From positions 11,098,001 through 11,162,000 of the forward strand of contig JBHGNT010000005.1 of NCBI GenBank assembly GCA_043228905.1: DNA of 64,000 nt, read 5' to 3'. This document shows, piece by piece, positions 16,341-45,307 of the stretch. Position numbers and translations under genes: made by a program. Source of the stretch: Azolla caroliniana (taxonomy: Eukaryota; Plantae; Polypodiophyta). Positions within the stretch are counted from its first letter, which is position 1. The number at the start of each line of letters is the position of its first letter. The notes under the pieces were generated by a model, which did not search any database, was not told the DNA's origin, and worked only from the letters and a program-made list of their open reading frames with translations.

Positions 16341-16388
16341 TCTGGCGCCTTTTTCGAGCATGTGCACGTCGCTGCAAAAACAGGAATC

Positions 16389-16398: not shown

Positions 16399-16405
16399 AA
16401 AACTG

Positions 16406-20894: not shown

Positions 20895-20905
20895 AAGGGG
20901 GAGAT

Positions 20906-22790: not shown

Positions 22791-24190
22791 TTTGGTCTTT
22801 TCTTCTCCGAGAAATACAGGCTCGTCTCTATGCTAGTTCACATGTCACTTGCAAAAGATTCTTCTAACCCTTTTGCTCTGATGCCATGTAAATTTAGATT
22901 ACATGTGTGGAAGCGTTATGTGCGAACAAAGATGTAAAAGAATACGTGTGCGGAACCGTATGCGAAAGACACAAAGTATACGGTTCGAAAGTACGATAGT
23001 TCAGTAAAACGCAGAAAACAAAACTATATTCAAGATAATTCTATGTATGTTCTCTGTGTGCATACTTTATGCTCTGTGAGCACCTTTTATACAAGCCCTG
23101 ACTATTGGGCTGACACAAGTACTTAGAGTTCTTGACCGCTCATAAATGAGCATCCTACACTTACTCCCAAAATTATTCCTTATGAGGAATAACATTCAAA
23201 TGGCCTCTCGGTTTACACACCGCTACAACCATATTGTGCGTATGGTTTTACGTACCCAGTCTACTCACTGGGTTACGCACCCGTTTACGCACCCAATGTT
23301 GAGCTTGTCTCTCAACACTTGAGATTCGCCCACGCATCCTTTGGCGTCTTAGCATCCCGAATGTAGCTCAAGAGTTGGTCGCTCACACAGGACGCGAAGC
23401 AATAAAAAACTCTACTTACCGCTTGTTCCCAAGCCAAAAAATCTCTATGTGTCGATTCAGGTGTTTTATCATTAGCTCCTTCAACATAACTCTAGTAACC
23501 ATGACCAAGTAGGTACTGGTGCATCTTGTACGACCAAGATGTGTAGTTGCTCATGTAGAACTTCTCAGTTGGTAGCAAGCTTCCCATTCCTCTGTCCATA
23601 TTACTATCTTATCCTTTCCGAAAACAATAACTTAACTCTGTCTTTATCACAAGCTTTTATGTTAGCTACAAAGGAGTCTCAATCCTCACACTTTGACACC
23701 ATGTAAAAGAATACGTGTGCGAAAGACATAGAGTACACGGTTCGGAAGTGTTACCGATTAGGAACACATGCCACCCTCAATCCTTCAGGGTAGCTTACAA
23801 GGTGACTGTGGTGCAAGGGAATAGGAATGCGTATTACGTGATCGATAGGGTGTAAGGAATAGACGGCTACAACCTAACCTTTATAGGGGCGTAGCACCCA
23901 ACGCGTACTTACCTTGTGTTTGCTGCAACACAGTCATATATAGAGAACGAGACACGGAAACAAGAGACCAATAGGCCAATAGACAGAACACCAAGATTAG
24001 AGAAGATAAACTAATATTAAAACGGCACTCTCATAATACGCTAGCCCTTTACAATGGTCTCTCGCCCTTTATATACACAGGGCTTCCAATCGGTTATGCT
24101 CCCTGCATACAACCGTTGCACGTTACTTTAATATAATACTCTATTCTCCATGCGTTATGTCCGGCGGTTACAATTCCGACGAACAACAAC

Positions 24191-24230
24191 TGCCACGCCT
24201 GTGGGACAGTGCCATGGCACGTCGAACCCA
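24191..24230 (-). promoter_or_regulatory. Bipartite tRNA-Arg(UCU)-like sequence at the PPT position
   Basis: Element sense TGGGTTCGA-cgtgccatggcact-GTCCCACAGGCGTGGCA-gt-LTR (CCA reads GCA here). Confidence 0.75.
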
Positions 24231-25996
24231 TCCGCTTCCTATTCGTCGCCCAAAATGTCGAGGATGTTTGGCTCCGTTCGTTCATCATGCACCGGAGGCG
24301 GAGTGATGTCCGTAGGTGCTTCGCTGGTACGCTCGGTTGGTGCATTGGTTTACGTGTTGTCCTCATCACATGGCTTCGTTCGTTTGCCATGCATCGGAGA
24401 TGGCGTGATGTCCGTAGCTGCTTTGTTGTTTGCCTTGGTTGGTGCGTCGGTCTTCGTGTTGACTTCTTCACACGGTCTCGTCGTGGTGGGCTCAGTAGGT
24501 ATGTTGTACGGGACATTTCCTTGTGGCTCTGGCGATGGATCTTCTTGGCGTGGACAGGCGTCTGGGCGCTGCTCCTCTCCGCTCGTAACGACCGCAGGGC
24601 TGCTCGATGTAGTTGTTTCCTCCGGTGCGTCATTTGGGTTAGGCTCGCGCTCATTGTGTTTGGCGGAGTCGTTGTCTGGTACTATTATTGCTTCCACCCC
24701 TTTCAATTCCTCCGCCCTCTGACTCTTGCTGCCGAGCTCCATTAGTAGGTTGAGGATGTCTTCCTAACTTTCCCCAAAATCTTCTAGCAGCTGCGTGAGT
24801 TCTTTAGAGTGTTGATCAACGAGCGTTTGATAATCCTGCGTGAGGTCCTCCCTGTTGGGAAATCAATCCCTCTGGATGGGATATGGTTATGAATGAAGAA
24901 GACCTATTGAGAACCGGAAGGATCCGGAAACCGGATCGGATGGGCCTGATGAGAACCGGAAGAGAAGATATATTTGTAAATATGTCTTGAGTAAGCCTAT
25001 TGAGGCTATATTTGTAAATAGCCCTAAGTTCATATAACTATAAATATGACTTAGGGCAATCACTTAGAAATGTGTTGTTGTCATATTGTTGTATGTGTAT
25101 TACTGTTGTATAGAGAGTAATAGATACAGTGAGAGAGGAGATACAGAGCAGAACTATGTTGTAACCACCACATGGCTGTCGGTTCAGTTCGGGGACAAGA
25201 GACCGTATAAGATCGATGCCACAGTGTGGGAGGTGATGCACATGAAGACGATGACATAGATCCGGTGCTTCATCGACATGAGCCTGTACAACAACTTAAA
25301 TGAAGAGAGCAAGGCTCATGAACTCTGGGAGAAGATCGACATCATGTTCGAGAACAAGAATGTTGTTAATCGGGTTTCGGTATTCCGGATGCTCGTGAGG
25401 CTCCGGTACTAGGACAACTCCAATATGGTGGAGCACATGAATGCATTTTTCTAATAGAATACTATCTTCTCTTATTTCTATGCATATCTGTGGTTTTCTC
25501 TGTTGCGTATTGTTAATCGTAAGGGTGTAGGCGTAAGTGCGGATACTAGTGCACTTCCTAAGGAGTTTAGGTTTTAGTCATCTCCCTTATACGCTACTAG
25601 GATATGAGGGAGTATCCCATTACGATTCATGGTACAACGGTTCTATTCCTTGTAAGACAGTCACCTTGAGGTCTACGTCGAAGGACTGAGCGTAGACAGT
25701 GTTCCTAATCAGTAACACTTTTGGCATGCCTAGGGCTCTGTGATTTCTCACAGACAAACAGCAAGGGATGGATGTCTAGTCATAAACGGCCCAGAGAACT
25801 GACCAGACAAGTCCGAGCACTCACGAGGTCCATCACATGCCAGACAAAGGAGTGTGCAAGGCAGAAACCTCGCCTCAGTGATATTTGTCTAGACCACAAA
25901 GTTGACTCCACGCTCACCCAACACCGCAACGTCAAGCAGGAAGTTCTGTCACCACACAAGTACTGTGATCTTTCCCTGCCCACCATCGCATCCTGA

Positions 25997-28900
25997 ATGG
26001 CCTTCTCCAACCCACGCTTTAATGGCAAAACAGATGCCGCAAGCCACATCCGGCTATTCCTGAATGTTTGGAACGCGAATCATATGGCGCAACGATTTCC
26101 AGAAGAGGAAGCGCACCAGTCAAAAATGACAGAGTTTGGTTTAACTCTAGATGGTAGAGCCGCATTTTGGCATTCATAGATGGATCTACCAGCAATCCAC
26201 ACCTTCGAACACTTGTAGTAAGCATTTTTGCGATTTTTTCATCGGAGGGTACCTCAACGCGAAATCATCGGGCAGTTCTACACAATCAAGCAACTGCCAA
26301 CAGAATTGGTCACGGATTTTAGTTTACACTTCCAAAATCTACGAACGAAATTAGAATGGGCACCGACAAATGACGAGGCTAGAGAGACGTTTTTGGTAGC
26401 CCTGCGGCGGCCTATCAGGACGACGCTCAACAGACGTATTGTGAAAGGGGAAACAGCCGACATGGTCATCGAGCGAGCATTACAGCTTGAGTTGGACGAA
26501 GAGGAGGAAGGATTTTTTCTATCCTTATTACGACAAGTGTTGCCTCAGGATGAGGAATGCCACTTTCGTTAGGCTATTCAGTGCAGGATTTGCCTCAATT
26601 CTGGGCATTCCGCGGTGGAATGCAATATGGGAATTCATTGCCCAATTTGTCACTCAAAGGCTCACACAGTCGAGCAATGTGAGTACAATATGCTGAAGAG
26701 ACCTACGCCCACAGTACGACGTGTAGAACCACAACGACCACCTCGCCGAACTGATCCAGGGCACCAAGAGGAACGACCCCGATATACGGATCGGAATCCA
26801 CGCGATGATCGGCACTACCGTAATCACCGGAATAACAACGATTCCGATGAAGAGGGGCCGAAGGAAGAAGAATATCGGGGCAACCACCGGTATAATAAAG
26901 GAGGGCGTCGTTGCAACAACCACCGTTCAACGAATAAGCGTGGTGGATTCAATGGGCCGCACTCACAAGGAAAGCATCGATAGTATAGGAACCAACGGCG
27001 TTACGACGAGAGTTCGGAGGATGACCAGCGCCAGGAGTCACGCAGGGACCAACCGCAAACACCCCAGCATTCCACGAGAATGCAACAAGACCAGGAGGAG
27101 CCAGCGACGCTTGGGGATAGGAATTTGCCACCAGTTGGAGAGAAAGGAGAGTCCTGTGTACATTGTTTCATCTACCAACAACCCGGACATTACGCAACTC
27201 AATGTCCACTACGCAAGGGCAAAGGACAAGCCGTAAATACGATTACAACAGAAGTTCAGTTGGTCACGACATGGCAATAAACAAAGAATGAAGACTGGGT
27301 TGCACAAGATGAGGTATGCAAATCGGCCCAAACATGGGTAGAAAAAGCAAATGTGGCCAATACGACGCGTATGCAGCAAGAGTCCGCAACCAATGTTGGG
27401 CCAATAGAAGACAACATAATATCCTCGGACCCCATATGGCAAGCACTGACAGGCTGCGAAATAACCCACACAATGGAAAAACTCCTTCAACTAGTTCCAC
27501 GATTTCGGCAGGCCGTAGAAGATCGCATAACAAGCAGGCCTGGTATAAACGTCTTAACAAATCTTACCGAAACTAGCACCAGACCAACAATGGTGGATCA
27601 CCACAATCTAGCCATTAAACTAGTACTACACGGGCAAGAAATAACAGGCTGTATAATTGACGGGGGCTTGGGCGTTAATGTGATTAGTGCAAAGACGTGT
27701 GAAAAGTTAGGAATTTCGGAATGGGAAGCTTGCCCCTTTTGTGCTTCGCATGGCGAATACCCGATCTATCAGACCCTTAGTGTTAATCCGGAAACTATGC
27801 ATCACCATTGGCGGTCACCGCTTTGGCATCTCGGCGGTAGTACTCGCACTTGACGCTCCGGGAGCGTACCCAATACTACTTGGCAGACCTTGGCTTCATT
27901 CGGCTAACATCAAACAGAGATGGCAACATAATTGTATTAGTTTCCAACGAGGGCGCAACAAAGTTTGCATACCCACCGAAGAAATGACAACGCAACCCAA
28001 AGGAATGACACCATTATACGTGGGAGACATAAATATGCTAGAAGGAGTGGATGATACAGAGCTGGAAGCATACCTGGATGAGCACCCGCGAATCATCCCA
28101 CTATTTGAAATTGACGTGATAGAAACCACAGCGGAATACGCTACTTTCCCTACACTTCACGAAGAAGCTTATGAAGCGGACCCAGAGTCGATAATGGAAT
28201 TAAACTAAGCACGGGCCTCGTTCGAAAAAGAAATGGAAATTTTACGACGAGTCACTGCCTCAGCGTTGGAAGAAGTTAACGTAGGAACGATGGCGGATCC
28301 CCGATTACTCTCCATGACAAAAGACTTACTACCAAGTCAGAAAGAGGCGATGTTAGCCTTGCTCAAGGAATATAAAGATGTGTTCGCATGATCCCAGGAA
28401 GACATGAAGGGATTAAATCCAAAGATCTACCAACATAAGATCAATTTAGCTACCGACGCGAAACCTGTTCAGCAGCGTCAATACCGAATGAACCCGAATT
28501 ACGTGGCTCTCGTAAAAGAAGAAATTGACAAACTTCTTAAGGTTGGGTTCATTCGACCGGTCAAGCAAGCTACGTGGTTGAGTCCGATGGTCGTAGTTCC
28601 GAAGAAAAATGGAAAAATCCGCGTTTGCATAGATTATCGGAAACTGAACGTCGTAACTATTATAGATGCGTTTCCCTTACATTTCACCGACAACGTACTG
28701 GACGCAGTTGCAGGGCATGACATGTATAGTTTTCTAGACGGCTTTAGTGGATACAATCACGTACGCATGCGTCCTAACGACCAAGAGAAGATGGCGTTTG
28801 TCACCGACTGGGGAGTTTATGTCGTGGTAGTAATGATGTTCGAGTTAAAGACGGCGCTTGCTACATTCCAACGGACAATTACGGATATTTTTCGGGATTA

Positions 28901-31121
28901 CATACCCACCTTCATGCAATCTTTCTAGACGATTTCGCGGTGTATGGGACAATAGCCGACCATCTAAGTCATTTACGACTGTGTCTGGAGCCCTGCCAGG
29001 CTGCATACTTAAGCCTGAATCCAGCCAAATGCGCGTTTGGCGTCACAAGCGGAGCACTCCTCGGCCACATCGTCAGCAAGGAGGGGATAGCGGTGCATCC
29101 TAATAAAATTTCCGCGATCATTCAAGCAAAAACACCGACAACTGCCAAAGCAGTCAGCCGTTTCCTGGGACAAATACGATGCAATAGTTGTATGTTACGA
29201 TATTTGGCGGATTTCACCACGCCGTTCCATGCCGTCGTCCACCGTACACCTTTCAATTGGATGACAACTAAAGAAAAAGCGTACGATGCGCTTAAGATAA
29301 TGCTGACTCAAGCACCAGTCGTACAACCACTAGATTGGGGGAAACCATTTCATGTTTTTGTAGTCGCCTCAGACATAGCAATAGGTAGTGCGTTGATGCA
29401 GCTCACGGAGCTGAATTGGTATAGACCGGTGTATTAGGCCACTCGGAAGCTATCAAAGGCGGACCGTAACTACTCCACAACGGAACGAGAAGCGTTGGGG
29501 ATGATGTACAACATCAATAAATTCTGACAGTATCTACTGGGACGGAAATTTTTGTTTCACGTAGACCATACAGTGTTGCTATACCTGGTGGGGAAGGAGG
29601 CGCTAACAGGAAAATTGGCTAGATGGATGTTGTTGCTCTAGGAGTTCAACTTTGTTATACAGCATTGACCTGGTACGCAACACGCCGTAGCGGATTTCTT
29701 AAGCAGGATAGATAATGGAGAAATGGTGTGGAAAGATGACAACGACTTTCCTGATGCAGACATCTTGCGGATCGCAACTATAATGACACGTACGGAAAAA
29801 TCTTTTCCATATCGTTGGTTGATGGAGATGACATTCTTTCTGACCATAGGTTTACCACCGCCGCAATTAAGGACAGACGAAAAGACACGATTGGCCGTCC
29901 GAAGTTGTAACTTCTCTCTAGTCGACGGGGTCCTATATCACAAAGACAACGACGAATTTGGCAAAGCGGAATACGCCAGGATGAGAAGTGGTTTTACATG
30001 AAGCTCACTGTGGTACGGTAGGAGGACACTACGCAAGCAATGTTGCGGCTCGTAAAGTCTGGCAAGCCGGCCTATGGTGGCCGACTACGCAAAGGGATGC
30101 CTATGAATATTGCAAACAATGTGATTTGTGTTAATGGATGGGTCAGCCCACGGAGGTCACAAGGATGCCACATCAACCAATGTTGCCATTGGATCCATTC
30201 CAAAAATGGGGACTCGATTTTGTGGGGTCGTTTACACCGACGACAACTCAGACTGGCAATAAATATATACTCGTGGCTACTGATTATTGCACCAAGTTGG
30301 TGGAAGCGAAGGCACTACGATAAAATACCGCAGTAGTAACGACAAAATTTCTGTATGAACACATCTAGTGTCATTTTGGCTGCCCCATCGAGCTCATTAG
30401 CGACCAAGGGAGCCACTTTCTAAATTCCGTCATTCGGGAGCTGACATAACACTATGCCGTTGTCCAGAAGAAGAGCATGCCGTATTATCCGTAGGCGAAT
30501 GTTTTAGCAGAGTCCACGAACAAAACGTTACAAACCATACTAAAAAAGATCATCAATGAGAACAGAACAAACTAGGATACCAAATTACATAGTGTGTTAT
30601 GGGCTTACTGGACCAGCTATAAGACCAACATACAATCCATACCTTTTTGGCTAGCGTTCGGGCGGGAGGTCGTAATGTCAGTCGAATTTCAGGTACCTAG
30701 TCTATGGATTCAAGTATGAGACCGGCTGTCAGAAGACAAATCTGAACAAATATGGCTAAACCAACTGCTCGAACTAGGCGAGACACGATTACGAAGCATG
30801 GCCATACTGGAATAAGAGCAGTGTCGGCGTAAAGCATTCATGGACCGGCATCGAAATGCGCGGGAAAAAGATTTTGTTGTCGGCAAAGCAGTCTTAATCT
30901 TTCAAACACGGATGGGGCAAATGCCAGGAAAATTAAGATTCCGTTGGACGGGGCCATACTGGATGGTGGGCACGAAAAACGACACATTTCAACTAGGCAC
31001 CTTGGCCGGAGAAGTGTTACGCCAAAAGGTGAATGGGTTTCAACTAAAACCCTACCTAGGACCGGTGCCTCCAAACCCGTTCCACGTCGTAAACGACATG
31101 ACCGAAGAATCCGCAGATTAA
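25997..31121 (+). pseudogene. gag-pol: gag-pol of element D
   Basis: Three CCHC-like knuckles, IIDGG protease, SFLDGFSGYN and FLDD RT, ASDIAIG RNase [11 protein letters not shown] integrase, RWTGPY. Confidence 0.92.
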
Positions 31122-31235
31122 TTAATAAAAAGGGACCCACCTGTATTATAATGTAACAGTACTATTGTATGTAACCGTTATTAAAAGGACTTGATTCATG
31201 CACAAACTTCTAGAGCAAGAACACGCAACACCACG

Positions 31236-34070
31236 ATGGCTCACAGACCAATGAACCCTAGGCCACAAAAAGAAGAAAATAGAAGGTTTTCTGCATAGTA
31301 CAGAAACCACTCTTCAACCTCTAACCCTCCTCGCTCTCGTCGCTCTCCTCACTCACCTTACTCCCCATCCTACCACAGAACCTACATTCACCATAGCCAG
31401 TAAACCTCACCCACTACCCACGAGTCTCAACCACCTACGATGCCGATCACTATTTCTGTCGCCTTGCGTAGATGGCTCCTTGAAAAGAGCCCGGATAGAT
31501 ACATCAAAGTCGTCGAGGCACTTGCTCAACCTGAAGCCCTGGAAATTGCCAAGAAGCTCAATATAGATACGGTCACCAATGCTACCATCCAGAAGAAGCT
31601 TGACTTATCATCGCTTGGAGAAAAACATTTCGACATCCCTCATGCGGAAACCTTGTAGAGATATTTCAGAGCATATTCAGTGTTTGCCAAAGCATACAGG
31701 ATGAAGGAACTCCCCGCCCCCTTCTTTTGAGAAATAGCCAAGTTCTTGCTGGAGGTAGGATGTGTACATGTAAATGCCTATGGGATCCCAAAGCAGAAGG
31801 CAGGCATCATCATTGATACCTTTGAAGGGCATGCGGTCGATTGGGGGGTAATTATGGGACCAGCATTACAGGAACGCCTGATGATACTATTTCCACCCCG
31901 AGGTCTGCCCGCACCACAACCCAACAAACCCATGCCGCCGCCACGTTACGCGAAACGAAGGTTAGCGGAGTTGGCTACCATGGAATGAGAAGATGAACCA
32001 TAACCTTCCCAGCCCAGCACGCGGACAACATAGGGAGAACGGCCAATGAGCAGGTAGGAAGCTCCACAGGAGCAGGAAGCCGGGCAACGCCAAGAAAGCC
32101 CGAGGCCGAAACGGCATAGGCTGGACATGAAAGATGGACGCGGACTAGTCAAAGACACAACCGTGGACAAAGACACAATCGCGAAAACAGACACGACTGC
32201 CTTGGTTGACAGTTCCGCAACTACGGAACCGAAGACCACTTTCGAAATAATCCGGGAACCACGACCGATCATTACGGCCCAGTCACAGCGAGGGAAAGGC
32301 GTACTCATAGCGGAAAGCAAAGTCCTAAAGTACCTGGACATCCCGGATATAACCCATGAGTTCGGTGCACTACTACAATTTGGAACAACTTACGAACTCA
32401 TGGAATTTTTGGCAACGCAACAAATCAAGGTATCCTAGAGAATGGCGGAGGAGCACGCAAGAAAATAGATGATTGAGCGAGCGCTCACACAAATAACGGA
32501 AAGTGAGGATGAAGGGCCCCTAGTCAAGGTAGGCAGGCAACAAAATGCAGGGATTCAGTGTATGGGCATCGAACTACCTCCATTGAATGCGGCCCTAGTC
32601 GAGGTACATCGGGAATTGGCTAGAGAGTGTATGGGGGCCAAAGATATGGCTAACAAGAATAAAAACGTGTCGAAAATAGTCAAGATGACTCAAGCCCAAT
32701 TATACCATGCCCAAGACGCATTACGGAGCTCGAATAGAGCGTCACTAGGGCGCCGCAAAATCCCGAACCAGCAACGGGTGAGGACCTCTCGGTAACCCTA
32801 CAAGAGGAGATTGCCACACAACAGGCCATCGCTGCTAAAGCAAAAAGGGCTACACAGCTTGCAGAGTCCGAGATTGACCGCCTCCGCTCTGAACTCCGCC
32901 AATCTTCCGATAGAGAAAAGGACATCCGGGCCAAGGGCCCAAAAGCAGTGAAGGCACTCGAAGAGAAACTCGAAGCGGAGACAACAACACACACCAGCAC
33001 GAAAGAAGAAAACACCAAACTACGGGAGGAAGCCCAAAAGTCGAAAGCGGCGATTGTAGGACTCCAGGCATTATTGGAAAAGAGGAAAACATGGTACGAC
33101 GAGCAGCTCGTACGAGAATAGGAGGTGAGGCATCAGGTCGAAATCCGCCTGAACAATGAAATGGGCCGGCTGGAGCAATTACACTCGAAGGAAACTCAGA
33201 TATGGGTAGGAATGAAGAACAATTATGAGGAAGCGGTTGCGGTTAGTAAGCAAGAAATCGAAAACCTCAAAAAAACCCTAGAAGAAGCGCAAAACCGCTG
33301 CCAAGTAATAACCGACAACGTGAGCATACTTCGTCAAACAAATCGGGAGAGGTTTACGGCGCAATTACAAGCAACGCTAGACAAAGGTTGGATGGTGTGG
33401 GCAACACAAGCGGCAGAGTTGCATACCTACTGAGTGGACTGGGAGAACCGTAGGAAAAAAGGCCGAGGAAGGCATTGCGGCAGTACGGGAGGACCTAGCA
33501 TAGGATTATCACACGCTAGCGGACCAACATTCCGAGGAACTCGCGCAGCTACTCCACGATTTCGACGAAAGTCATGAGGATATTTTTCACCGAATCATGG
33601 AAATAGGCAGCACACGGCAAAGTGCGGAACACATCGCGATACCAAAAAGTGATACCGCCGAACAGTAGGAACCTTAGCCCAATTCACCGGAGATTACAAC
33701 TACGGCAAGCAGCACGTGGCAAAGAGTGAAGCCCATCGCGATACCGGAAGGTGATACCGCCGAACAGGAGGAACTTCGGCCCAAATCACTAGAGAGGACA
33801 ACTACGGCCAACAACACTGAGGAAGTTACGAACAGGACAGAGCCTCAGCCTACTGAGAGCCCACAAACACAACAGCTAGCCACAGTAGAACGGAATGAGC
33901 CAGTAGACCTGGGTCCGCCCACGCAGGGAGAAGTTGACGCCATGGAAAACCCCACCGAGCAAGTACAAGACATGCAACCGCGCAACGACGTGCCTACGGG
34001 CACTACACCTTCCCCAGACCGGTACGTAGGAGTGGAGCCAAACATCCGGGATATTTTGGAGGAAGAATAG
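31236..34070 (+). pseudogene. Accessory 3' ORF (sense orientation), disrupted
   Basis: Fragments 31440-31658, 31746-31988, 32127-32438, 32469-32795, 33125-33433 and 33726-34070; homologous to 13358-16340. Confidence 0.8.
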
Positions 34071-34075
34071 AGGGA

Positions 34076-34115
34076 TGGGTTCGACGTGCCATGGCACTGT
34101 CCCACAGGCGTGCCA
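34076..34115 (+). promoter_or_regulatory. Bipartite tRNA-Arg(UCU)-like sequence replacing the PPT
   Basis: TGGGTTCGA-cgtgccatggcact-GTCCCACAGGCGTGCCA-gg-TGTTG(LTR). Confidence 0.82.
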
Positions 34116-34117
34116 GG

Positions 34118-34560
34118 TGTTGTCCGCCGGAATCGTAACCGACAGACAGAAGCGCAGAAACATTATAATATAGTAAAGCATGAAGAAACACATGTAACAG
34201 TTCATGCAGGAAGCGTGAACGCCTAAAAACCCTGTGTATATAAAGGGCAGAAATCCTCTGTAAGAGGTAGCGTGTAATTTTGGGATACAGAGCGTTTTTC
34301 TAATAGAATACTATCATCTCTGATCTCTGTGCATATCTGTGGTTTTCTCTACTGTGTTCTTTGTTTCTCTGTTGCGTACTGTTAATCGTAAGGGTGTAGG
34401 CGTAAGTGCGAATACTAGTGCCATCTCCCTTATACGCTACTAGGATACGAGGGAGTATCCCATTACAATTCACGGTACGAAGGTTCTATTCCTTGTAACA
34501 CAATCACCTTGAGGTCTACGTCGAAGGACTGAGCGTAGACAGTGTTCCTAATCGTTAACA
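34118..34560 (+). repeat. 3' LTR of element D (443 bp)
   Basis: Its 3' part matches 25446-25717; TATATAAAG near 34236. Confidence 0.92.
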
Positions 34561-35928
34561 CCGGGCTAGAAGGAAAGCAGTTTTCCCTAGCAAGGGTAAA
34601 ATCAAGCTTGCTAGATGAAGAAGCTCGCCAGAAGGACCGGGAGTCCAGAACCAATCCGAAGGCCTTGGTCACTGAAGATGACCACAACTAGGGAAGAGGC
34701 TGGTATTGGAATCCCCAAAACTGGGACAAGTCGGGGACGAGGTCAAAGTCAAGGGGGAGACCTACTTGCTTCTAATGTGGGAAGCCGAGGCACTTCCTAA
34801 AGAACTGTCAACATTTCCAGAAAGAGAAAGGAACCGATAGTGCCGACTCGGAGAAGGGTTCGAACCGGAAATGGTCGGATTGGAAGGGAACGTCGGCAAT
34901 ATCGACAAGTAAAGAAGAACTGATGCTCATTACCGAAGAGAATGAGTTAAACCTTGTCGGCGACGAGATAACGTGGGTTGTCGATTCCGGAGGATCGTTT
35001 CACCTTACACCGGATCAGAGATTCTTCTCATCCTACATAGTTGGAGATCACGGTTGTGTCCGGATGGGGAATGAAGGGACATGCCGAATTATCGGCATAA
35101 GAGATGTGTTGTTGACGACATCAACTAGATGCAAGTTGTTGTTGAAGGATCTCCGACACGTTCCGGAGGTTCGACTGAACTTGATATCAACCGAACGGCT
35201 ATATGATGAAGGCTATACAGGTAGCATCCAGAATGGAGTCATGAAGTTTAGCAAAGGTAGGCTAATAGTGGCTCGAGCACGGAAAGTCAACACATTGTAC
35301 TTGATGCCTGCCATCCAACACTGCTGGTGAGTTGTGGCACAAAAGGTTGTGTCACATGAGTGAGAAGGGGATGAAGAGGCTTGCTGAACACAACCTCATT
35401 CCGGTGAGGACGTACATCTTGAGAAGTGCACCGATTGCTTGGCTGGAAAGCAAAACCGAACCTCTTTCCAGTCAGGACCATCGATGAGATGGAATGCACC
35501 ACTAGAGCTGGTGCATACCGATGTGTGTCAAGTGGACACGAAGTCACATGCTGGATCGCAGTACTTCGCGACCTTCATAGATGACCACAGCCGGAAGCTG
35601 TGGGTCTCACCATTTAAGATGAAGGATCAACTGTTATCTGTCTTCAAGGAGCTCCACACGAGAGTGGAAAGAGAAACCGGCCGAAAGCTGAAGGCGATTC
35701 AAGTAGATAATGGAGGAGAATATTGCGGGCAATTTGAGGAGTACCGTCGGTCGAAAGGAATCTAGCTCGAATTTACCCTCCCGAAGATGTCGGAACTAAA
35801 CGGGTCGGCTGAAAGGATGAACCATACCATAATGGAGAGATTCTGGAGCATGCTCACACATGCCAAGTTACCCAATGTCGTGACTTGAGAATAGGAGAGC
35901 GAAAAATAAGATGACAGTAGAAGGTAGA

Positions 35929-35964
<36 letters not shown>

Positions 35965-36340
35965 GAGAGAGAGAAAGAACACTAGAGATGGAAAGAGAGT
36001 TTATATTATAAGAGAGCAAGGATTACAAAGAGTAGGCTAAGGGGATACAAACTGGTGTTGAACCGAATGAGTTGTGATGAATGAATAGACACCTATTTAT
36101 AGGTCCTTATGGAGTATTCTGGAATGTTCTAGAATATTTTAGATATTTATGATATTTAATATAATTATGGAATATCCTAGAATGTTCTAGAATGTTCTAG
36201 AATACTCTAAATGTCTTGTAATAACTAATAATACATTTATTATAACTATACATCATATATGTTACTATAATGGTTAAAGGTCTAACATATAGACCAAGAC
36301 GTCTTGAGCTCGAATCCTTGTAAGGCCAAAATGTATGTCG

Positions 36341-39300
36341 TCATGACATTATCCCCCCTTTTTGACGATGAATTCCACGAGTCGGAAGACAAGATTTCGG
36401 ACTTGGCTTATGAGGATATTTGTTGTGAAATGCAGCAACCATTTCGGAGGCATTAGCAAGATTCTCAAGGGGTTCCCATGTTCGATCATTAGGTGTATAA
36501 CCTAACCAGTCAACCAAATAATACAGTTTGTTGCGAACGATCTTGGAGTCGAGAATGGCAACAACTTCATATTTGGAGCCATCCGAAATTTCGATTGGAG
36601 GTGGGGGAGATGTAAGACGGCCTGGAATAGAGCTGGTTGTGTACGGCTCCAAAAGTGAAACATGGAAGACCGGGTGAAGATGCATATGAGGGGGAAGATC
36701 AAGGCGAAATGCCACATCATTGATCTTACCAGATATCACATATGGGCCAAAATGTTGATAATCCAATTTGCAGCAAGGTCGGGTTGTTTTAATGCGACCT
36801 TGTAAAAGCCATACTCGATCCCCCACTTGAGACGTAGTCGATGAATCACGTCGATGACGGTCGGCAACCTTCTTTTGAGTGTTTTGAGCATCACATAAAT
36901 GGTGCAAAAGGATATCTTGAACTTCTTGGAGTCGGGTGAGCCGATCTTCAGCAGCTGTGTTTGTCGGGAGTTCGGGATGTTCAAGCATAGTCCAACGAGG
37001 ATGGTACCCAATGTTTGCAAAAAATGGGAAATATCCAGTAGAAGAATGTTCTGAGTTGTTGTAAGCAAATTCCGCCAAATGTAATAGATCAACCCAATCA
37101 TCTTGTTGATAGTTGACAAAACAACGAAGATATTGTTCTACTGTTTGGTTGGTGCGCTCACTCTGTCCGTTAGTTTCTGGATGGTAGCTGGAAGAGAGTT
37201 TGCAAGAAGTATGTAAGAGTTTGAACATGTGCCGCCAAAATTTTGAGATGAACTGGGGACCCCGATCACTGATAATATCATCAGGAAGACCATGATGCCG
37301 AAACACCTCTCGCATGAGTAACTCGGCTGTCTCTTGGCTCGTAATGGCCTTTGTGCAGGGAAGAAAATGTGCCATCATGGTAAAACGATCTACTACCATG
37401 AGAATAGAATCAAAACCCTTGGAAGGTGGTAGATCCGTAATGAAGTCCAATGAAATAGATTTCCATGGACTCTCAAGAATAGGCATTGGCTGTAATAAGC
37501 CATATGGATGATGTCGAGGTTTTTTGGATCGGCAACATGTATCACAACTACGAACATAATCCGTAACAAAATGGCGAAGTTGTGGCCACCAATACCTTCG
37601 AGAAATTAACGCCAAAGTCTTGTGGATGCCAAAATGTCCAGCCATTGGTGTATCATGACATTGTTGCAAGACTTGGAGTCGAGAAGGACCATCAGGCACA
37701 TATAAGAGATTTTGTCGAAAAAGTAAACCATCATGCCAATTGAACTGGTTGTAGTCTTGACGAGGATTTTGAGATTGTGAACAAGAAGCACGATCTGGGA
37801 TAATATGGCTCAGAATATCTTGGGCGAATTCATCAGTCTCAATATGCTCCCGAATGGAGTTTAGAAGACTTGAATCCTCGGGTGTGTCTATAGCATGAAA
37901 AGTCATTAGTCGTAGACGGTCAGGACCCAAGAGGATTTGCTTCTGACTTTCAAATGCAGCCTCTCCTGGTTGAAGTTCCATATATGAACGCTGAGATAAA
38001 GCATCTGCTTTGCCTTGTTGCCTCCCAGGGCGATATAGAATTACGAAATCAAAACGAGTTAAAAATTGCGCCCAACGAGCTTGTCGACGACTCAAGACTC
38101 GAGCACTTTGGAAGTACGTTAGATTTTTGTGATCATTATAGACAATTATTTGTTGAGAGAAACCCTCCAAAAAATGACACCATTGTTGAAAAGAATCCAC
38201 AATGGCAAGAAGCTCTTTGTCATGAATCTCATAGTTGATTTCTGCAGCTTCGAATTTCCGTGAATGAAAAGCCACAGGGTGCAGTTGGCCATCATTGCTA
38301 ATCTGGGATAATACGCTTCCTAGTGCGAAGTCAGATGCATCAGCTTCCAGTATAAAGCGCTTCAATGGATCAACATGCATCAAAATTGGTGCGGATGTAA
38401 ATGCTTGCTTTAATCCTTCAAATGCAGAGTTTGCATTTATACTCCACACAAATGGTTGATTCTTTTGTGTCACTTGAGTGAGGGGCAATACGATCTTTGA
38501 ATAATCTTTGATGAACTTGTGATAAAAGTTTGCGAACCCTAAAAAACATTGTACATCTCGCACAGACTGTGGTGTTTGCCAATCCAAAACTGTTTGAACC
38601 TTTGCTGGATCCATAGAGATGCCATGTGAAGAGACTATGTACCCCAAAAATTCCACTTGACGCTGGTCAAAGCTGCACTTCTCCAATTTTGCATAGAGAC
38701 CATATTCACGCAACCGTTGCAAAGCTTGTCGAACGTGTATATCATGATCCTCTTGAGTTTTTGAGTAGATCAAGATATCATCTAGGTAAATTATGACGAA
38801 AATATCGAGGAAATCTCGAAAAATATCATTCTCCATATGTTGGAAAACTGTTGGTGCATTCGTGAGACCAAATGGCATCACTGTATACTCAAAATGGCCA
38901 TAGCGAGTACGAAAAGCAGTCTTCCATTCATTCCCAGGACAAATTCGAACAAGATTGTAAGCACCTCGAAGATCTAACTTTGTGAAATACTTAGCTCCAT
39001 TGAGGCGTTCCAGAAGGCTCGAAATCAATGGTAGAGCATATCGGTTTCGAATAGTTACTTTATTCAATCCTCGATAATCCACGACCAGACGAAGCGAACC
39101 ATCTTTCTTCTTAACGAAAAATATGGGTGCACCGGCAGGAGATCTTGAATGCTGGATAAACCCATTCGCCAAGTTCTCATCAATATATTCCCGAAGAACC
39201 TCTAACTCTGTGGGTGAAAGGTTATAAATTGGCCCCCATGGAGGCTCTTTTCCGGGCTGCAAATCAATCGGGCAATCATATGGTCGATGCTCTGGTAGTC

Positions 39301-39985
39301 TATTTGCCTTCACCTTATCAAAAACATCGGAGAATTCTATATATTTCTTCGGTAGTTGGACCCCCGATTCTTGTGAGCTCGATGTGGGAGTTGCTAAAAC
39401 TGCGAACACCAACATGTCTTCCTTTCGTCCTTCCTCACGTAATTGATGTATAGAGATTGTCGAAATCTTTTGGAATGTCATATCCTTTGTTGGAGTTTTA
39501 AGAGGCTCAGAATGTATTGTGACTTCTTCAATGGTTCTTTTTCTCCAATCAATAGTTGGGTTATGTAGCTCAAACCATGGAAGATCAAGAACTAGGGAGT
39601 GCTCTGGACTACTAATGATGTTGAATGAGATGACACTAGCCAAATTGCCTAGGACTACATGAATTGGTTCAGACTCTTCAACTATATCACCTGATGCTAT
39701 GGGGCGTCCATCAATGACTTTGACTGACACTGGGCTTGGGAGCTTATGCAACTGAATTTTATGCATTACAGCAAACTCACGATCCATGAAACAAGAGTTG
39801 GCTCCAGAGTCTAAGAGGGCAGAAGCTGGGACTTGATGGCACCTAGATGTGTTAAGCTCAACTTGTGCAGAGAAAAATCGACTAACTTGACCGGATGAAA
39901 TGGAACCACAACTAGGGATGGACGTTACATGCCTAGGGTTGTCCAACCAAATGGCTCTGATTTTGGCCGGACTTACTCGTTTAAC
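36341..39985 (-). CDS. pol: Pol polyprotein (protease, RT, RNase H, integrase, chromodomain), open reading frame; reached by -1 frameshift
   Basis: LLDSGA, YLDD, EADASD, HHCC and DDE integrase motifs, GPY, YEVVAILDSK...YLVDWLGY...TWEP chromodomain; stop codon lies inside the 3' LTR. Confidence 0.95.
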   Translation of the reverse strand, partial: VKRVSPAKIRAIWLDNPRHVTSIPSCGSISSGQVSRFFSAQVELNTSRCHQVPASALLDSGANSCFMDREFAVMHKIQLHKLPSPVSVKVIDGRPIASGDIVEESEPIHVVLGNLASVISFNIISSPEHSLVLDLPWFELHNPTIDWRKRTIEEVTIHSEPLKTPTKDMTFQKISTISIHQLREEGRKEDMLVFAVLATPTSSSQESGVQLPKKYIEFSDVFDKVKANRLPEHRPYDCPIDLQPGKEPPWGPIYNLSPTELEVLREYIDENLANGFIQHSRSPAGAPIFFVKKKDGSLRLVVDYRGLNKVTIRNRYALPLISSLLERLNGAKYFTKLDLRGAYNLVRICPGNEWKTAFRTRYGHFEYTVMPFGLTNAPTVFQHMENDIFRDFLDIFVIIYLDDILIYSKTQEDHDIHVRQALQRLREYGLYAKLEKCSFDQRQVEFLGYIVSSHGISMDPAKVQTVLDWQTPQSVRDVQCFLGFANFYHKFIKDYSKIVLPLTQVTQKNQPFVWSINANSAFEGLKQAFTSAPILMHVDPLKRFILEADASDFALGSVLSQISNDGQLHPVAFHSRKFEAAEINYEIHDKELLAIVDSFQQWCHFLEGFSQQIIVYNDHKNLTYFQSARVLSRRQARWAQFLTRFDFVILYRPGRQQGKADALSQRSYMELQPGEAAFESQKQILLGPDRLRLMTFHAIDTPEDSSLLNSIREHIETDEFAQDILSHIIPDRASCSQSQNPRQDYNQFNWHDGLLFRQNLLYVPDGPSRLQVLQQCHDTPMAGHFGIHKTLALISRRYWWPQLRHFVTDYVRSCDTCCRSKKPRHHPYGLLQPMPILESPWKSISLDFITDLPPSKGFDSILMVVDRFTMMAHFLPCTKAITSQETAELLMREVFRHHGLPDDIISDRGPQFISKFWRHMFKLLHTSCKLSSSYHPETNGQSERTNQTVEQYLRCFVNYQQDDWVDLLHLAEFAYNNSEHSSTGYFPFFANIGYHPRWTMLEHPELPTNTAAEDRLTRLQEVQDILLHHLCDAQNTQKKVADRHRRDSSTTSQVGDRVWLLQGRIKTTRPCCKLDYQHFGPYVISGKINDVAFRLDLPPHMHLHPVFHVSLLEPYTTSSIPGRLTSPPPPIEISDGSKYEVVAILDSKIVRNKLYYLVDWLGYTPNDRTWEPLENLANASEMVAAFHNKYPHKPSPKSCLPTRGIHRQKGGIMS
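39941..39985 (-). promoter_or_regulatory. Programmed -1 ribosomal frameshift signal
   Basis: G_TTA_AAC in the gag frame, 6-nt spacer, 11-bp stem GTCCGGCCAAA/TTTGGTTGGAC; the -1 frame is the pol ORF. Confidence 0.8.
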
Positions 39986-41091
39986 ACATCATCTAATTGG
40001 CTCAAGACATCAAATGTATTTTTATGACAGGGACTACCAGGCCTACTTGGGTTACGAGAAGGCGGGGCAGAAATTGAGATGGGATTGTCCTGAGCACTTA
40101 CTTGGTTAACTTGTCGTCGTGGTTTATGTGGACAATTCACAGCAATATGCCCTAGACCACCACAATAGAGGCATAGATGATTCGCTCGCCGTCATTGCTT
40201 TTCAGCATCCGATAATGGTCCTCGACGTTGTGTTGTCTCGATTTCCATTGTAGTAGGCCCTTCCACCACACTTGACTTTGATACTTGGGGTGGAGTTGCA
40301 ACCACCGAAGCATATGTTTCTGTTGGTCGAAAACGTAACATTTGTTGGTGCTCAGAACGCCGCTCAAATAAGCGATTGTCACATCGCACGGCCCGACTTA
40401 CTGCTTCAGTAAGAGATTTTGGATCATCATGGAAGGTAAAAAGTAAATCCTTCACATCATTGCGCAGACCTTGACGAAATTGGTCCATTAATGTTGCCTC
40501 GTCCCATGGAATATCACATGCTAGAAGGCGAAAATCTGCAGCATAAGCGAAAGTAGGATGATCTCCTTGTCGTAATCGCCGAATTTTGTTTATTGCAGTC
40601 CTCATACTATCAGTGTCTCCAAAGTTGGCTTGGAACTCATTAATAAACCCTTCAAAATCTTCTAATAATGGTGAGTGCTTCTCTAGGAGTGGTGCAAACC
40701 ACGCTAATGCGGTACTCGTTAACAAGGTACTAACTAGACCCACATGAGCAACATCAGTTGGGTAACGGCTAGGATGCAATTTAATCACAAGCCGTACCTG
40801 ATTTAAAAATCCACGAAACTGAGACCTTGTACCATCAAACTTGGCCGGCAGACTAACCTTGGGTTCCTTCGTCGAGGTTTGAACTTCCGCCGCTTGTCGT
40901 TGCAATAGAGTAGTCTCCAATTGATGCACCCGTTGAGATAATTCATCATATTGTTGTACTTTTTCAGCACTTACTTGTTGTAGGTCTCCCAACAATCTTT
41001 GATTTTCATGATCTAGTGCCACGAATTTGGTTGTTAGCATTTCGAGCTCGGAGAGAACATGCATATATTCTTGCTTGCTGACGGACTCCAT
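39973..41091 (-). pseudogene. gag: Chromovirus Gag with a single premature stop at 40192-40194
   Basis: PAKFDGTRSQFRGFLNQ capsid domain; the frame continues past TGA through CLYCGGLGHIAVNC to TAA at 39973-39975. Confidence 0.9.
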
Positions 41092-41171
41092 AGTTGCAAT
41101 AGAAAATTGCTAGATTTGGTTGAATAAGGTTAAGATAAGAAGAAGAAGTTGGAGAAGAAGAAAAGAGATAG

Positions 41172-41182
41172 ATTCGGTTCAA
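41172..41182 (-). promoter_or_regulatory. Self-priming PBS (TTGAACCGAAT)
   Basis: Complementary to an 11-mer in the LTR (36058-36068; 41351-41361 with one mismatch) about 33 nt downstream of the start of TATAAATA. Confidence 0.85.
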
Positions 41183-41235
41183 ACTGTCATGACTTGAGAA
41201 TAGGAGAGAGAAAAATAAGATGACAGTAGAAGGTA

Positions 41236-41271
<36 letters not shown>

Positions 41272-42025
41272 ACACTAGAGATGGAAAGAGAGTTTATATT
41301 ATAAGAGAGCAAGGATTACAAAGAGTAGGCTAAGGGGATACAAACTGGTGTTGAACTGAATGAGTTGTGATGAATGAATAGACACCTATTTATAGGTCCT
41401 TATGGAGTATTCTGGAATGTTCTAGAATGTTCTAGAATACTCTAAATGTCTTGTAATAACTAATAATACATTTATTATAACTATACATCATATATGTTAG
41501 TATAATGGTTAAAGGTCTAACATATAGACCAAGACGTCTTGAGGTCGAATCCTTGTAAGGCCAAAATGTATGTCGTCATGACACCCAAGAAGTTTTGAGC
41601 TGAGGCGTTGATGACGGCGACCTATGTGATAAACAGATCTTCCTTAGTACCCTTGGGAGGAGACTCACCTCAGAAAGTATATGGATAGGTAAAGATGTAT
41701 CTTACTGGTATCTAAAGGTGTTCACGTGTCTCACATACGTGCATGTGGCGAAGGAAAAGAGAGCAAAGCTGGATCCAAAGTCCCGGCCATTCATATTGTA
41801 AAAGAATATGTGTGCGGAAGCGTATGCAAACACAGAGTACACAGTTCGGAGAATGACAGTTTGGTAAAACAGGGAAAACGCAAAGATGGAGATGGAGAGG
41901 GAGAGAGAGAGAGAGAGAGAGACAACTCAGTTCTATTTCAAAATAATGACACTCTGTACATACTTTGTGCTCAGTGAGCCCTTTTATACAAGCCCTGACT
42001 ATCGGGCTAACACAAGTTTTACTTA

Positions 42026-42364
42026 CCGGCCGGTTTCCGGTTTTGCTTGCCGGCCCGATTCCGGATTGCTTGCCAGCTGGTTCCAGATTGCTTGTCGGCC
42101 GGTTTCTGGTTTTTGGGAACTTAGCCACCATCATCCATCAAGACAAAGTGGCCAAAGTGCTCTTAGCACAAATGAAAATGAGGGTCTCAAGGTGCTTATA
42201 TAGCCAGGGCCTTAAGTTTCCTATCTATGTGGGATAAATAATAGTTCTATTTTCCCTATCTTCTATAACATGCCATTAAGCTAATATAAAGTACTTATTT
42301 TATTTTATTTATTATTTTTATTTTTATTTTTATTTTTACATAGTGTGAGAAGATTCACACGACA
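42026..42364 (-). mobile_element. Fragment of a third member of the TGTCGTG (4-bp TSD) family
   Basis: Begins TGTCGTGTGAATC on the minus strand and contains TATCCCACATAGA, shared with ~6010 and ~48130. Confidence 0.65.
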
Positions 42365-43858
42365 ACGGTGCCCACATTGTTGGTTTCGAGCATAAACATC
42401 CTCCCTTCACAGCGCCCTTGCGCGATTACTTTGCCCTCCTCTTCTATGAAGCACCCTAGATGCGTGAATCAAACTTGCATCCATTGGTCGATGATCTGTC
42501 CGACCGACACCAGGTTCTTCGTTATTGTTGGGATGTGTAGCACGTTCAAGAGTTTCCCTTTCTGCCTAACATGGCCGAGGGGAACTTCACCAACATGTTT
42601 GATGGTATGCGGGGTGTCATCTCCCGTTTCAACTACCCCTTGCTTTTCTGACTTCTCCAAGTACGAGAACCATTCCTCGTGACTCGTCATATGATTTGAC
42701 GGTCCACAATCAACATACCACATCTCGCTCGATTTTGAGGTGTTCACAGCCATTGAATTGGCCTTGTGTTTCATTACGAAGGCAGGGCCCGATCCATTTC
42801 CTCATCGTAGTGCGATTTTTGACGCCTTCCTGCGTCTCTCCCGTTTGGTCCGGCTTTGTCTGAATCGGCTTGTTTCTTCAAGCACTCGCTCTCCCTGTGG
42901 CCTTTCTTCCCATAGTTCCAGCATTCCGTTGCGGCCTTATCTTGCCGGCTTCCAACGCCGCCATGACTCCCCCTGGTTCAGGAGGGTTCGGAATTGTTCT
43001 TGACATTTTGATTATGCCGTCCATTCAGCTCTTTTCGGCCGCCTCCATTATGCGTTGATCCGCCTTGTTCACCACAACCACGGGGCCTATCTACCTCCGT
43101 GTACAACATCTTGTCATCGGCGTGCATACTCGTCGATGCACCTGCGTGATTTTCCTCCACGAGCAACATTGACTGAAGCTCAAAGAACGTACGCGTATTC
43201 TCCCTCGTACAGACCGCCGTTCGGAACGATCCGAACTTTGATGCTAACCCACCAAGACAAACCTGCACCATCTCATCTTCCTCGACGCTAATCAGCCACC
43301 GACATATCTCGTTGTCGAACATTGCTCAACTCCTGCTTGAGTTGAAGCTTCCTAGCTATAGTGCTAGCGGCGAAAATCTTCTTGAGATTCGCCCATGCAT
43401 CCTTTGGCGTCTTGGCATCCCGAATATGGCTCAATAGTTGGTCGCTCACACAAGACGCAAAGCAGTAGAGAACTCTGCTTGCTGTTTGTTCTCAAGACCA
43501 AAAATCGTTGTGTGTCGATTCGGGTGATGTGTCATTATCTCCTTCGACATAACTCCAATAGCCATGACCAAGCAGGTATTGGTGCATCTTGTACGACCAA
43601 GATTTGTAGTTGCTCCTGTCGAGCTTCTCAGTCGGTAGCGAGCTTCCCATTCCTCTGTCCATTTTGTTGTCTTATCTTTTCCGAAAGTCAAGAATAACAA
43701 CTCAACTATGTCTATGTCGCAAGCTTTTCTGTCGGCTGGAGAGGACTTCAACCCTCGCACTCTGATACCATGTAAAAGAATACGTGTGCGGAAGCGTATA
43801 CGAAACACAGAGTACACAGTTCGGAGAACGACAGTTTCGTAAAACACAAAAAATGCAG

Positions 43859-43859
<1 letters not shown>

Positions 43860-43894
<35 letters not shown>

Positions 43895-44250
43895 TATATT
43901 ATCATCTTCGGAGGTCAAATATAACCTATGAGACCAAAAGTATTACATTTCACGTGATACATGTGAAAGTGAGTAGTGACTCTCGATGTTCAAAAACTTT
44001 ACCAATGAATGTTGCAATCGAGAGTGCACATTGTGGTTGTGAGAGGAATTCATGCAAAGATTGGGCTTGGTCGAAGAGATGTGGAAAGCATGGTTGAATA
44101 TGATCAAAGGCAGACCATTGTATCAAAGTGTGATACTCAGACTCGCGAACTTGTGTAGGGCAAAGTGTGCATAGCCGACCACTCTCATCACTTGTGCCCC
44201 AACGCCTTGTTTCACATCGCAGTGCATGTGAGGCAAGTTGCATGGAAGCA
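43860..44250 (-). mobile_element. 5'-truncated non-LTR retrotransposon (RTEX/L2-Crack-type ORF2 C-terminus) with (ATCT)n tail
   Basis: LASHALRCETRRW...RLCTLC...ESEYH zinc-finger end, stop at 43950, short 3' UTR, about 8 tetranucleotide repeats; absent from the partner LTR near 41885. Confidence 0.8.
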
Positions 44251-44967
44251 ATGGTGATGGAGAGAGAGAGACAACTCAGTTCTATTTTAAAATAATGACA
44301 CTCTGTACATACTTCGTGCTCAATGAGCACGTTTTATACAAGCCCTGACTATCGGGCTGACACAAGTACTGACAGTACTAGACTTCTCCTAAATGAGCCT
44401 ACTACACTAACTCTCAAAATTATTCCTTACGAGGAATACCATACTAACGGCCTTTCAGTTTACGCACTGATACAACCACATTGTGCGTACTATTTTATGC
44501 ACCCAGTCTATGTACTGGGTTACGCATCGTGTTACGCACCCAATGTTGAGCTTGTCACTCAACACATATTCCTTGGATACGGTGATGAGTTCGGTTACCG
44601 GGTGTGAGATCTGGTCGACAGGAAGGTGTTCTAGAGTTGGGACATAGTTTTCATGGAAGACAGGACCATTGCTGATTGGGAGTCGGAAAAGAAGATGATC
44701 AACTCCGGATCATCCAATGAAAACTGGTTTGAGGACACAAGGACCTACCCGGTTGAAAACCGGATGTTGGCCGGTAACTAGAGGACACTCGACGAACCAA
44801 CCAGATACAAACAAGAAACCGAACCGACTAAAGAAGAAGAAGAAGAAGACATCGGAACTGGACAAGATCCTGACTCGGATTCGGATTCGGAACAAACAGA
44901 GGAACCAGCAGTCAAAAACCAAGGACGGAGATATCCTCTCCGAGAGAGAAGAGCCTCCCAGAGATTT

Positions 44968-45307
44968 TGTTACCCGTAAGAATATACTAGGAGGCAGAAG
45001 GGTATGCGTAACGATGTGGTTGATGTGTATGTCTAAAGTAAATGAGTGTGTGAGGATGAGTATGTGTATGGACACATGCACAATTATGTGCATGTGTACA
45101 AGAATGTGTAACGGTCTTATTTATAACGGTCATGTAACCGTTACATTGGATGTATTATATAAACGCCCTGGTATGTAATGAAATATACATTTTTCCCTCT
45201 CATTTTGTGTCATTTCCTATTTGTCTTTTTATTTAGCTCTCTCTTTATCGTAACCCCCTTGGGAGGGGGGTGAAGCCATTCTAGGCCACCCCCCCACCCC
45301 ATTAACA
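44968..45307 (+). mobile_element. Solo LTR (340 bp)
   Basis: TGTTA...TAACA, TSD GATTT, TATATAAA near 45156. Confidence 0.88.

Follow-up and report, generated by a model that had tools for sequence, protein, structure and literature searches.

A lineage of Ty3/gypsy LTR retrotransposons present in Azolla caroliniana has no polypurine tract (PPT) at its 3′ LTR and carries in that place a copy, in sense orientation, of the 3′ tail of tRNA-Arg(UCU). This tail copy, hereafter the module, is the sole conserved feature at the place where a plus-strand primer would be expected, and its CCA lies 2 nt from the TG that opens the LTR. It is treated as a universal rule that retroviruses and LTR retrotransposons prime their plus strand from a PPT (PMC5371799, PMC3185511, PMC6317226). 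Judged from sequence, position and conservation, the module probably replaces the PPT as primer determinant, whether the primer is supplied in trans by a tRNA or in cis by the RNA of the element itself. A tRNA tail standing in for a PPT suggests, without proving it, an undescribed way of priming the plus strand.

Three elements, designated A, B and C, carry the module in the stretch of 64,000 nucleotides that was analysed (the window). In element A, the module occupies positions 34076–34115 of the + strand and consists, in order, of TGGGTTCGA, CGTGCCATGGCACT and GTCCCACAGGCGTGCCA. The first part (34076–34084) corresponds to nt 50–58 of tRNA-Arg(UCU) and spans the 5′ strand of the T-stem and the T-loop up to A58. 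It is followed by a 14-nt hairpin insert between tRNA positions 58 and 59 (34085–34098) and by a core (34099–34115) that corresponds to nt 59–76 without C66, the CCA being included. A spacer of 2 nt, GG (34116–34117), separates the CCA from the TG of the 3′ LTR at 34118. On the inner side, the remnant of an accessory ORF (33726–34070, + strand), whose acidic C-terminus reads DILEEE before the stop codon TAG (34068–34070), ends 5 nt ahead of the module. The module of element B (13305–13344, − strand) is composed of GGATTCGA, the hairpin CGTACAAGGTACT and GTCCCACGGGCGTGCCA, with TG as spacer (13304–13303), and that of element C, a truncated copy (24191–24230, − strand), has the core GTCCCACAGGCGTGGCA and the spacer GT (24190–24189). 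The module ends in CCA in A and B and in GCA in C, each time exactly 2 nt ahead of the TG of the 3′ LTR; the spacer letters themselves differ among copies (GG, GT, TG, CG). A preliminary description of this DNA had placed the module at these three sites, and its letters and coordinates proved exact. When the 17-mer core was counted over the whole window, with R allowed at one position and up to three mismatches, three occurrences were found against 0.17 expected by chance (none of 100 shuffles reached three), all of them 2 nt from an LTR start.

The anatomy of the elements leaves no ambiguity about their orientation. Element A (25443–34560, + strand) has a 3′ LTR at 34118–34560 (TGTTG...TTAACA, with a sense TATA box, TATATAAAGGG), a 5′-truncated 5′ LTR at 25443–25717 and, in between, a degenerate gag-PR-RT-RH-INT region (25976–31061) on the strand of the module, RT and RNase H being both found on the + strand. 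This gag-pol region is colinear in tblastn with that of an autonomous relative, L001, and shares 64–67% amino acid identity with its Pol. Element A is an old element, and its 5′ LTR has been shortened by deletion. Its surroundings consist of a long repeat present in two colinear copies (17017–21477 versus 25173–25444 plus 34563–47428), the second of which is broken by element A, by a chromovirus and by a further insertion at 41797–44565. With the first copy as empty-site reference, the deletion at the insertion site of A is seen to have removed part of its 5′ LTR and 117 bp of flank.

Element B (12869–16839, − strand) is bounded by a 3′ LTR (12869–13302) and a 5′ LTR (16406–16839) of 434 bp, which are 97% identical, end in TGTT...AACA and are flanked by a perfect 5-bp target site duplication (TSD), ATACT, at 16844–16840 and 12868–12864. 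No module is present upstream of its 5′ LTR which, together with the TSD, establishes that the U3 edge truly is the TG located 2 nt past the module. The 3′ LTR of element C (23749–24188, − strand) resembles that of A, and the LTRs of A, C and a more distant relative, L126, are similar in form to the TG...CA-type LTRs of B. Element B, which is young and non-autonomous, has three ORFs (350, 443 and 247 aa) at 13358–16439 (− strand), none of which has a Pfam match. The last one (247 aa) is Q/E-rich, is predicted to form a coiled coil and terminates in ILDILDEK before its stop, a C-terminal motif that is kept immediately ahead of the module in A, C, L001–L003 and L006. The accessory ORFs are coiled-coil, acidic and of low complexity, again with no Pfam match.

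L001, a metagenome contig of 7 kb, was assembled through its LTR. In it, the final part of the accessory ORF is succeeded by the module, the TG and the LTR, and past the LTR come CAGTTTT, a primer-binding site (PBS), TGGCGACCACGATTCC, gag with its zf-CCHC, protease, RT, RNase H and integrase (Pfam matches: Retrotrans_gag, zf-CCHC, aspartyl protease, RVT_1, RT_RNaseH, Integrase_H2C2 and rve). By their LTRs and TSD, their gag-pol order and their PBS, these elements are thus Ty3/gypsy LTR retrotransposons from which the PPT alone is missing. Misorientation is ruled out by the direction of gag-pol, the 5′ PBS (11–18 nt), the TATA boxes in the LTRs and the TSD. The preliminary description had likewise held that the element is not mis-oriented and that a TGG-type PBS lies at the opposite end, and gag-PR-RT-RH-INT on the strand of the module, the TSD of B and the PBS itself bear this out.

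No PPT abuts the 3′ LTR in A, B, C or the relatives L001–L003 and L126. That no purine tract adjoins the 3′ LTR had already been noticed from the letters of element A. The last 15 nt ahead of each 3′ LTR are occupied by the tRNA-like core, of which about half are purines. The sole purine-rich stretch, in A at 34058–34080, was considered as an upstream PPT and rejected: it is the coding end of the acidic ORF C-terminus, is not shared by B or L001–L003, and lies about 38 nt from the LTR edge set by the TSD. In the same window, two control elements have classic PPTs abutting the TG, namely a chromovirus (AAAAAGGGGGGATAA) and a copia element (GAGGGGGAG, with an iMet PBS, TGGTATCAGAGC). The chromovirus (35876–41583, − strand) is nearly intact, with a 1201-aa Pol ORF containing a chromodomain, a 299-aa gag and LTRs 92–97% identical, and it is inserted in a sequence whose uninterrupted paralogue is found at 18224–18992. 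The Ty1/copia element (52177–57540, + strand) looks intact as well, with LTRs 95% identical and its PBS directly after the CA. Among relatives compared by Pol, those at 44–46% identity have normal PPTs, as in Cryptomeria (a G14 run) and Riccia (GAGAAAAGGGG), whereas L126, at 54% identity (LTRs 85% identical, approximate TSD), has none. The trait therefore marks a sublineage, the switch from PPT to tRNA tail falling between 46% and 54% Pol identity among the relatives compared.

The identity of the module was established against real tRNA genes. A metagenome collection was scanned with the uninterrupted module (T-arm plus acceptor 3′ strand), which returned 120 loci, in which ARAGORN called 77 tRNA-Arg(TCT) genes. 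The genes belong to the eukaryotic 73-nt type and terminate in ...GATTGTGGGTTCGAGTCCCACCGGGCGTG, with CCAGGCGTG or CTGGGCGTG replacing CCGGGCGTG in variants. Two loci, L116 and L108, have tRNA-Arg(TCT) genes without an encoded CCA on contigs of ENA project ERZ10343xx, which also contains the element family at 76–98% protein identity. The module is tRNA-Arg(UCU) nt 50–58, an insert exactly at A58|G59, and nt 59–76 without C66, CCA included. The end of tRNA-Arg(UCU) had been given in the preliminary description, as had the reading of the module as nt 59–76 minus one C plus nt ~50–58 with a hairpin exactly at the A58 boundary; the 77 genes verify all of this, and some of them come from the project that holds the element family. 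Measured by the usual definition of a PBS in mirror image (at least 10 contiguous nt, including the CCA), the module matches the tRNA-Arg(TCT) genes over GGGCGTGCCA (10 nt) and GTCCCAC (7 nt). It has the sense of the tRNA and is not complementary to it. The module is only a partial tRNA, limited to the T-arm and the acceptor 3′ strand: ARAGORN found no tRNA in the whole window, and an Rfam search (cmscan) of 33950–34250 gave no tRNA match even at E≤10. A tRNA gene, a tRNA-derived SINE and a Pol III TRIM were rejected as explanations, there being no complete cloverleaf and no A/B-box unit.

The module is widespread within the lineage. Besides the window copies, the layout of CCA, 2 nt and TG (GCA in C) is found in L001, L002, L003, L006, L062, L124 and L126. 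Nine instances (A, B, C, L001, L002, L003, L124, L006 and L126) were aligned, and a tenth, L062, follows the same plan. The nine are alignable solely in and around the module, and the invariant columns are concentrated in its last 10 nt and in the opening TGTT of the LTR. The 17-nt core is 94–100% identical when families A, B and L006 are compared, against only 43–62% for the 60-nt flanks on either side, a difference in which selection is visible. The inner edge of the module, at 13344, is exactly where 27 contigs of run X13 diverge, and the family is very abundant, with contigs from four organisms. L126, a single decayed copy, has an uninterrupted, CpG-decayed copy of tRNA nt 54–76 followed by GG|TGTTGG, and lacks both the hairpin and the T-stem partner; this linear copy by itself leaves sequence identity to the tRNA 3′ end as the common denominator of all modules. 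Three further loci are uninformative: L129, whose 5′ LTR is cut by the contig end, L130 (Adiantum), which has no clear LTR pair, and L131, whose contig ends ahead of the 3′ LTR. Two more fragments of the lineage in the window keep no 3′ end, one with gag-PR and a 5′ LTR (281–3464, − strand; PBS TGGCGACCGTGATTC) and one with RT-RH-INT, truncated at 47559 (47559–50783, − strand).

In LTR elements, it is where the plus-strand primer has its 3′ end that determines the U3 edge, and the linear DNA ends about 2 nt outside TG/CA (PMC5371799, PMC3185511). On the minus-strand DNA, the complement of the module has the form of a PBS, and its position is mirror-symmetric to that of a PBS. A mechanism can be proposed on this basis, in which the module would be the plus-strand primer determinant of the lineage in place of a PPT. 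After minus-strand synthesis, the module's complement would serve as a primer-binding site, and either the host tRNA-Arg(UCU) or an 18-nt 3′ fragment of it that ends in CCA would anneal there. Counted from the CCA end, the duplex would comprise 10 bp, one bulged tRNA base (C66) and 7 bp, with 9–10 more bp past the extruded hairpin in most families. Extension from the 3′ OH of the tRNA would cross the 2-nt spacer and continue into U3, which would place the left end of the linear DNA 2 nt outside the TG, as in retroviruses, and RNase H would afterwards remove the tRNA primer. Co-folding of tRNA nt 47–76 with the minus strand gave this bipartite duplex with the hairpin extruded, at −51 to −53 kcal/mol versus −26 to −29 kcal/mol for shuffles, an outcome that was obtained with RNA parameters as a proxy and that follows by construction from the sequence identity.

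Priming of the plus strand in trans by the host tRNA-Arg(UCU) or its 18-nt 3′ fragment is the reading that we tentatively prefer, at somewhat short of an even chance. No retroelement is known to prime its plus strand with a tRNA. Several features count against it. Use of the bipartite site in full would require the T arm to be unwound and pairing to extend across m1A58; the conserved deletion of C66 would break the duplex after 10 bp; elements of the B subfamily would have to package two tRNA species; and the hairpin is left without an explained role. The preliminary description had proposed either a bipartite site for a second tRNA or processing of the tRNA mimic of the RNA itself: the geometry of this proposal is coherent and the conservation fits it, and from these we infer the priming itself. 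Present in the tRNA and not in the module, C66 would be a built-in marker that, in a primer–U3 chimera, tells a primer in trans (CCCACCGGGCG) from a primer in cis (CCCAC-GGGCG).

A primer in cis, a clearly less probable source, would arise if the module of the genomic RNA stayed annealed to the minus-strand DNA and RNase H cut exactly after the CCA. The module would then be a non-purine functional analogue of the PPT, for which the hairpin may serve as a ruler. The same positional evidence applies here as to a tRNA in trans, and the hairpin also speaks for it. Its insert is 13–14 nt long across modules, and its stem (5′ strand/3′ strand) reads GUGC/GCAC in A and C, GUAC/GUAC in B and L001–L003, GGAC/GUCC in L006, GGGC/GCCU in L062 and, with one mismatch, GUAC/GUUC in L124. 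Two of the four pairs have changed on both sides (UA to GC and AU to GC), that is, in a compensatory manner, and 95.8% of cells are paired, a level reached by 5 of 500 shuffles in a small sample of six distinct rows; slid registers give at most 67%. The hairpin thus seems to be under selection, and from its base to the CCA the hybridised stretch measures 17–18 nt. RNase H of reverse transcriptases cuts 17–18 nt from a recessed RNA 5′ end, and in tRNA-primed elements it already cuts at tRNA 3′ ends. A cis primer would in addition need no second packaged tRNA, and the deletion of C66 would be immaterial to it. However, RNase H resistance and precise cutting are known solely for purine-rich hybrids (PMC3185511, PMC5371799), the identity over 17–28 nt to one particular tRNA is left without a reason, and L126, albeit one decayed copy, has no hairpin.

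The comparison of the 3′ module with the 5′ PBS bears both on the preferred reading, a tRNA acting in trans, and on a role of the module at the RNA level. Element A has its PBS, TGGCATGCCTAGGGCTC, at 25722–25738 (+ strand), 4 nt past the LTR; it is probably a CpG-decayed tRNA-Arg(UCU) site. That of element B, TGGCAACCACGATTCC, lies at 16383–16398 (− strand), 7 nt past the LTR, and reads TGGCGACCACG in relatives; B, L001 (1077–1092), L003 and the copy at 281–3464 (3019–3033) share the form TGGC(G/A)ACC(A/G)(C/T)GATTC. L126 (2952–2969) and L129 (528–545) have TGGCGATCCTGCTGGGGA, and in L006, L062 and L120 the PBS is the complement of tRNA-Arg(UCU), 33–76 nt long. A short T run precedes each of these three types. 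The first 11 nt of the L001/L003 PBS (TGGCGACCACG) are those of the published HERV9 PBS (PMC4724089), and no tRNA matching TGGCGACCACG or TGGCGATCCTGCTGGGGA was found among the 286 tRNAs of the fetched loci. The 5′ PBS has thus changed from one tRNA to another at least twice, whereas the 3′ module remained tRNA-Arg(UCU), which argues against a role that needs pairing with the element's own PBS and for a role that depends on the sequence of that particular tRNA. Module and PBS are complementary in L006 and L062, and probably in A, whereas only about 5 bp are possible in B/L001 and L126, for which the module as a plain complement of the own PBS is ruled out. It is possible, with a probability just under one half, that a clade of plant Ty3/gypsy elements primes both strands with tRNAs, the minus strand at the usual PBS and the plus strand with tRNA-Arg(UCU) or its 18-nt 3′ fragment at a second, inward-facing site on the minus-strand DNA that took the place of the PPT. 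Such priming at both ends had been suggested from the window alone; it would take two different tRNA species in B and L001, as the tRNA of their PBS is not that of the module.

The elements in which the PBS is the complement of tRNA-Arg(UCU) form a third family, with LTRs of the form TGTTGTCC...AACACA, and the complement extends over 33 to all 76 nt of the tRNA, CCA included (L006: 1190–1266, − strand; L120: 1–800; L062: 200–236). It looks as if reverse transcriptase had read through the whole primer, which would imply weak or absent blockage at A58. L120 is a tandem LTR-tRNA-LTR array. The arrangement of a sense tRNA, AAT and TGTGTTA in L062 and L120 was set aside, being an ordinary 5′ PBS read on the opposite strand.

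It is distinctly improbable that the module acts only in the RNA, as a mimic of the tRNA top half (T-arm with single-stranded acceptor/CCA) or as a long-range pairing partner, with a cryptic plus-strand primer elsewhere. Possible roles would be to join the 5′ and 3′ ends for minus-strand transfer, to recruit reverse transcriptase or tRNA-binding host factors, or to shield the PBS from 3′ tRNA fragments. Precedents exist in the 5′–3′ bipartite PBS of Ty3, in CYC5/CYC3 of Ty1 and in the tRNA-like U3/R segment of HIV-1. The Arg(UCU)-complement PBS of L006 and L062, and probably of A, could indeed pair with the module; most copies retain the T-loop motif UUCGA and a T-stem of 4–6 bp, and a T-loop fold can accommodate an insertion after position 58. 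Yet the PBS of B/L001 and of L126 belongs to other tRNAs and could form about 5 bp at most with the module, L126 has no T-stem partner, and single-sequence MFE folds are heterogeneous between copies and do not settle the RNA structure. A role in the RNA accounts neither for the absence of a PPT nor for the exact 2-nt spacing.

It is very improbable, and already largely refuted, that the module is an inert, passively inherited fossil of an aberrant reverse transcription that captured primer sequence, or that the elements are mis-oriented or mis-delimited: the A/C-type insert (34085–34098; 24208–24221) does resemble a snap-back product, being a near-palindrome of CGTGCCA and TGGCACT (tRNA nt 70–76 and its inverse) that hints at a birth by snap-back synthesis, and read-through fossils with a whole tRNA complement as PBS occur in the same genome (L006, L120), but the core is conserved across families that can no longer be aligned in their LTRs and flanks, the hairpin covaries, the young element B with its intact TSD has the module, the family abounds in four organisms, and gag-pol, PBS and TATA box fix the orientation.

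Several known systems resemble the arrangement described here without being identical to it. As in a canonical PBS, a site of 10–18 nt is complementary to the 3′ end of a tRNA with its CCA, lies about 2 nt from the LTR edge and faces inward; here, however, the complementary strand is the minus-strand DNA on the U3 side, it would prime the plus strand, and a 1-nt deletion and, in most families, a hairpin at 58|59 break its continuity. With the PPT (PMC3185511, PMC5371799), the module shares a position immediately upstream of U3 and, presumably, the definition of the left end of the linear DNA, but it is not purine-rich and copies a host tRNA tail. The bipartite PBS of Ty3 has a 3′ segment in U3 that complements the T and D arms of the primer tRNA and acts in minus-strand initiation, and Ty3 keeps its PPT (PMC5371799); the module, in contrast, has the sense of the tRNA and lies outside U3, so that it is no Ty3-type segment. 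Helenus TRIMs also have tRNA-derived sequence within an LTR element, although as a Pol III promoter inside the LTR, with both PBS and PPT retained (PMC10886601). The survey of PBS types across plant LTR lineages by Neumann et al. says only that most elements have a PPT (PMC6317226). In the literature covered, which included few subscription journals and does not suffice to prove novelty, no description of a tRNA-sense copy replacing the PPT was found. A tRNA-like segment in U3/R of HIV-1 reportedly pairs with the PBS and aids minus-strand transfer. It, too, is a sense tRNA-like sequence near the 3′ end of a retroelement RNA, but HIV-1 keeps its PPT and the segment matches its own primer tRNA, whereas the present elements have no PPT and in two subfamilies the tRNA of the module is not that of the PBS. 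Finally, the plus-strand primer of hepadnaviruses is a translocated capped RNA oligomer, and Tf1 primes itself. Both set a precedent for non-PPT or non-tRNA primers, but their molecules and positions are different, and a tRNA primes the plus strand in neither.

Collectively, these data describe a successful, recently active and very abundant lineage that lacks a PPT and bears, in exactly its place, a copy of a host tRNA tail. Its elements will be mis-scored by LTR annotation tools that require a PPT. Should the tail copy function as a primer site, the choice of plus-strand primer can be re-invented. The lineage is also a natural system in which to study primer selection by reverse transcriptase and RNase H, and it would link the biology of tRNAs and tRNA fragments to a second step of retrotransposition.
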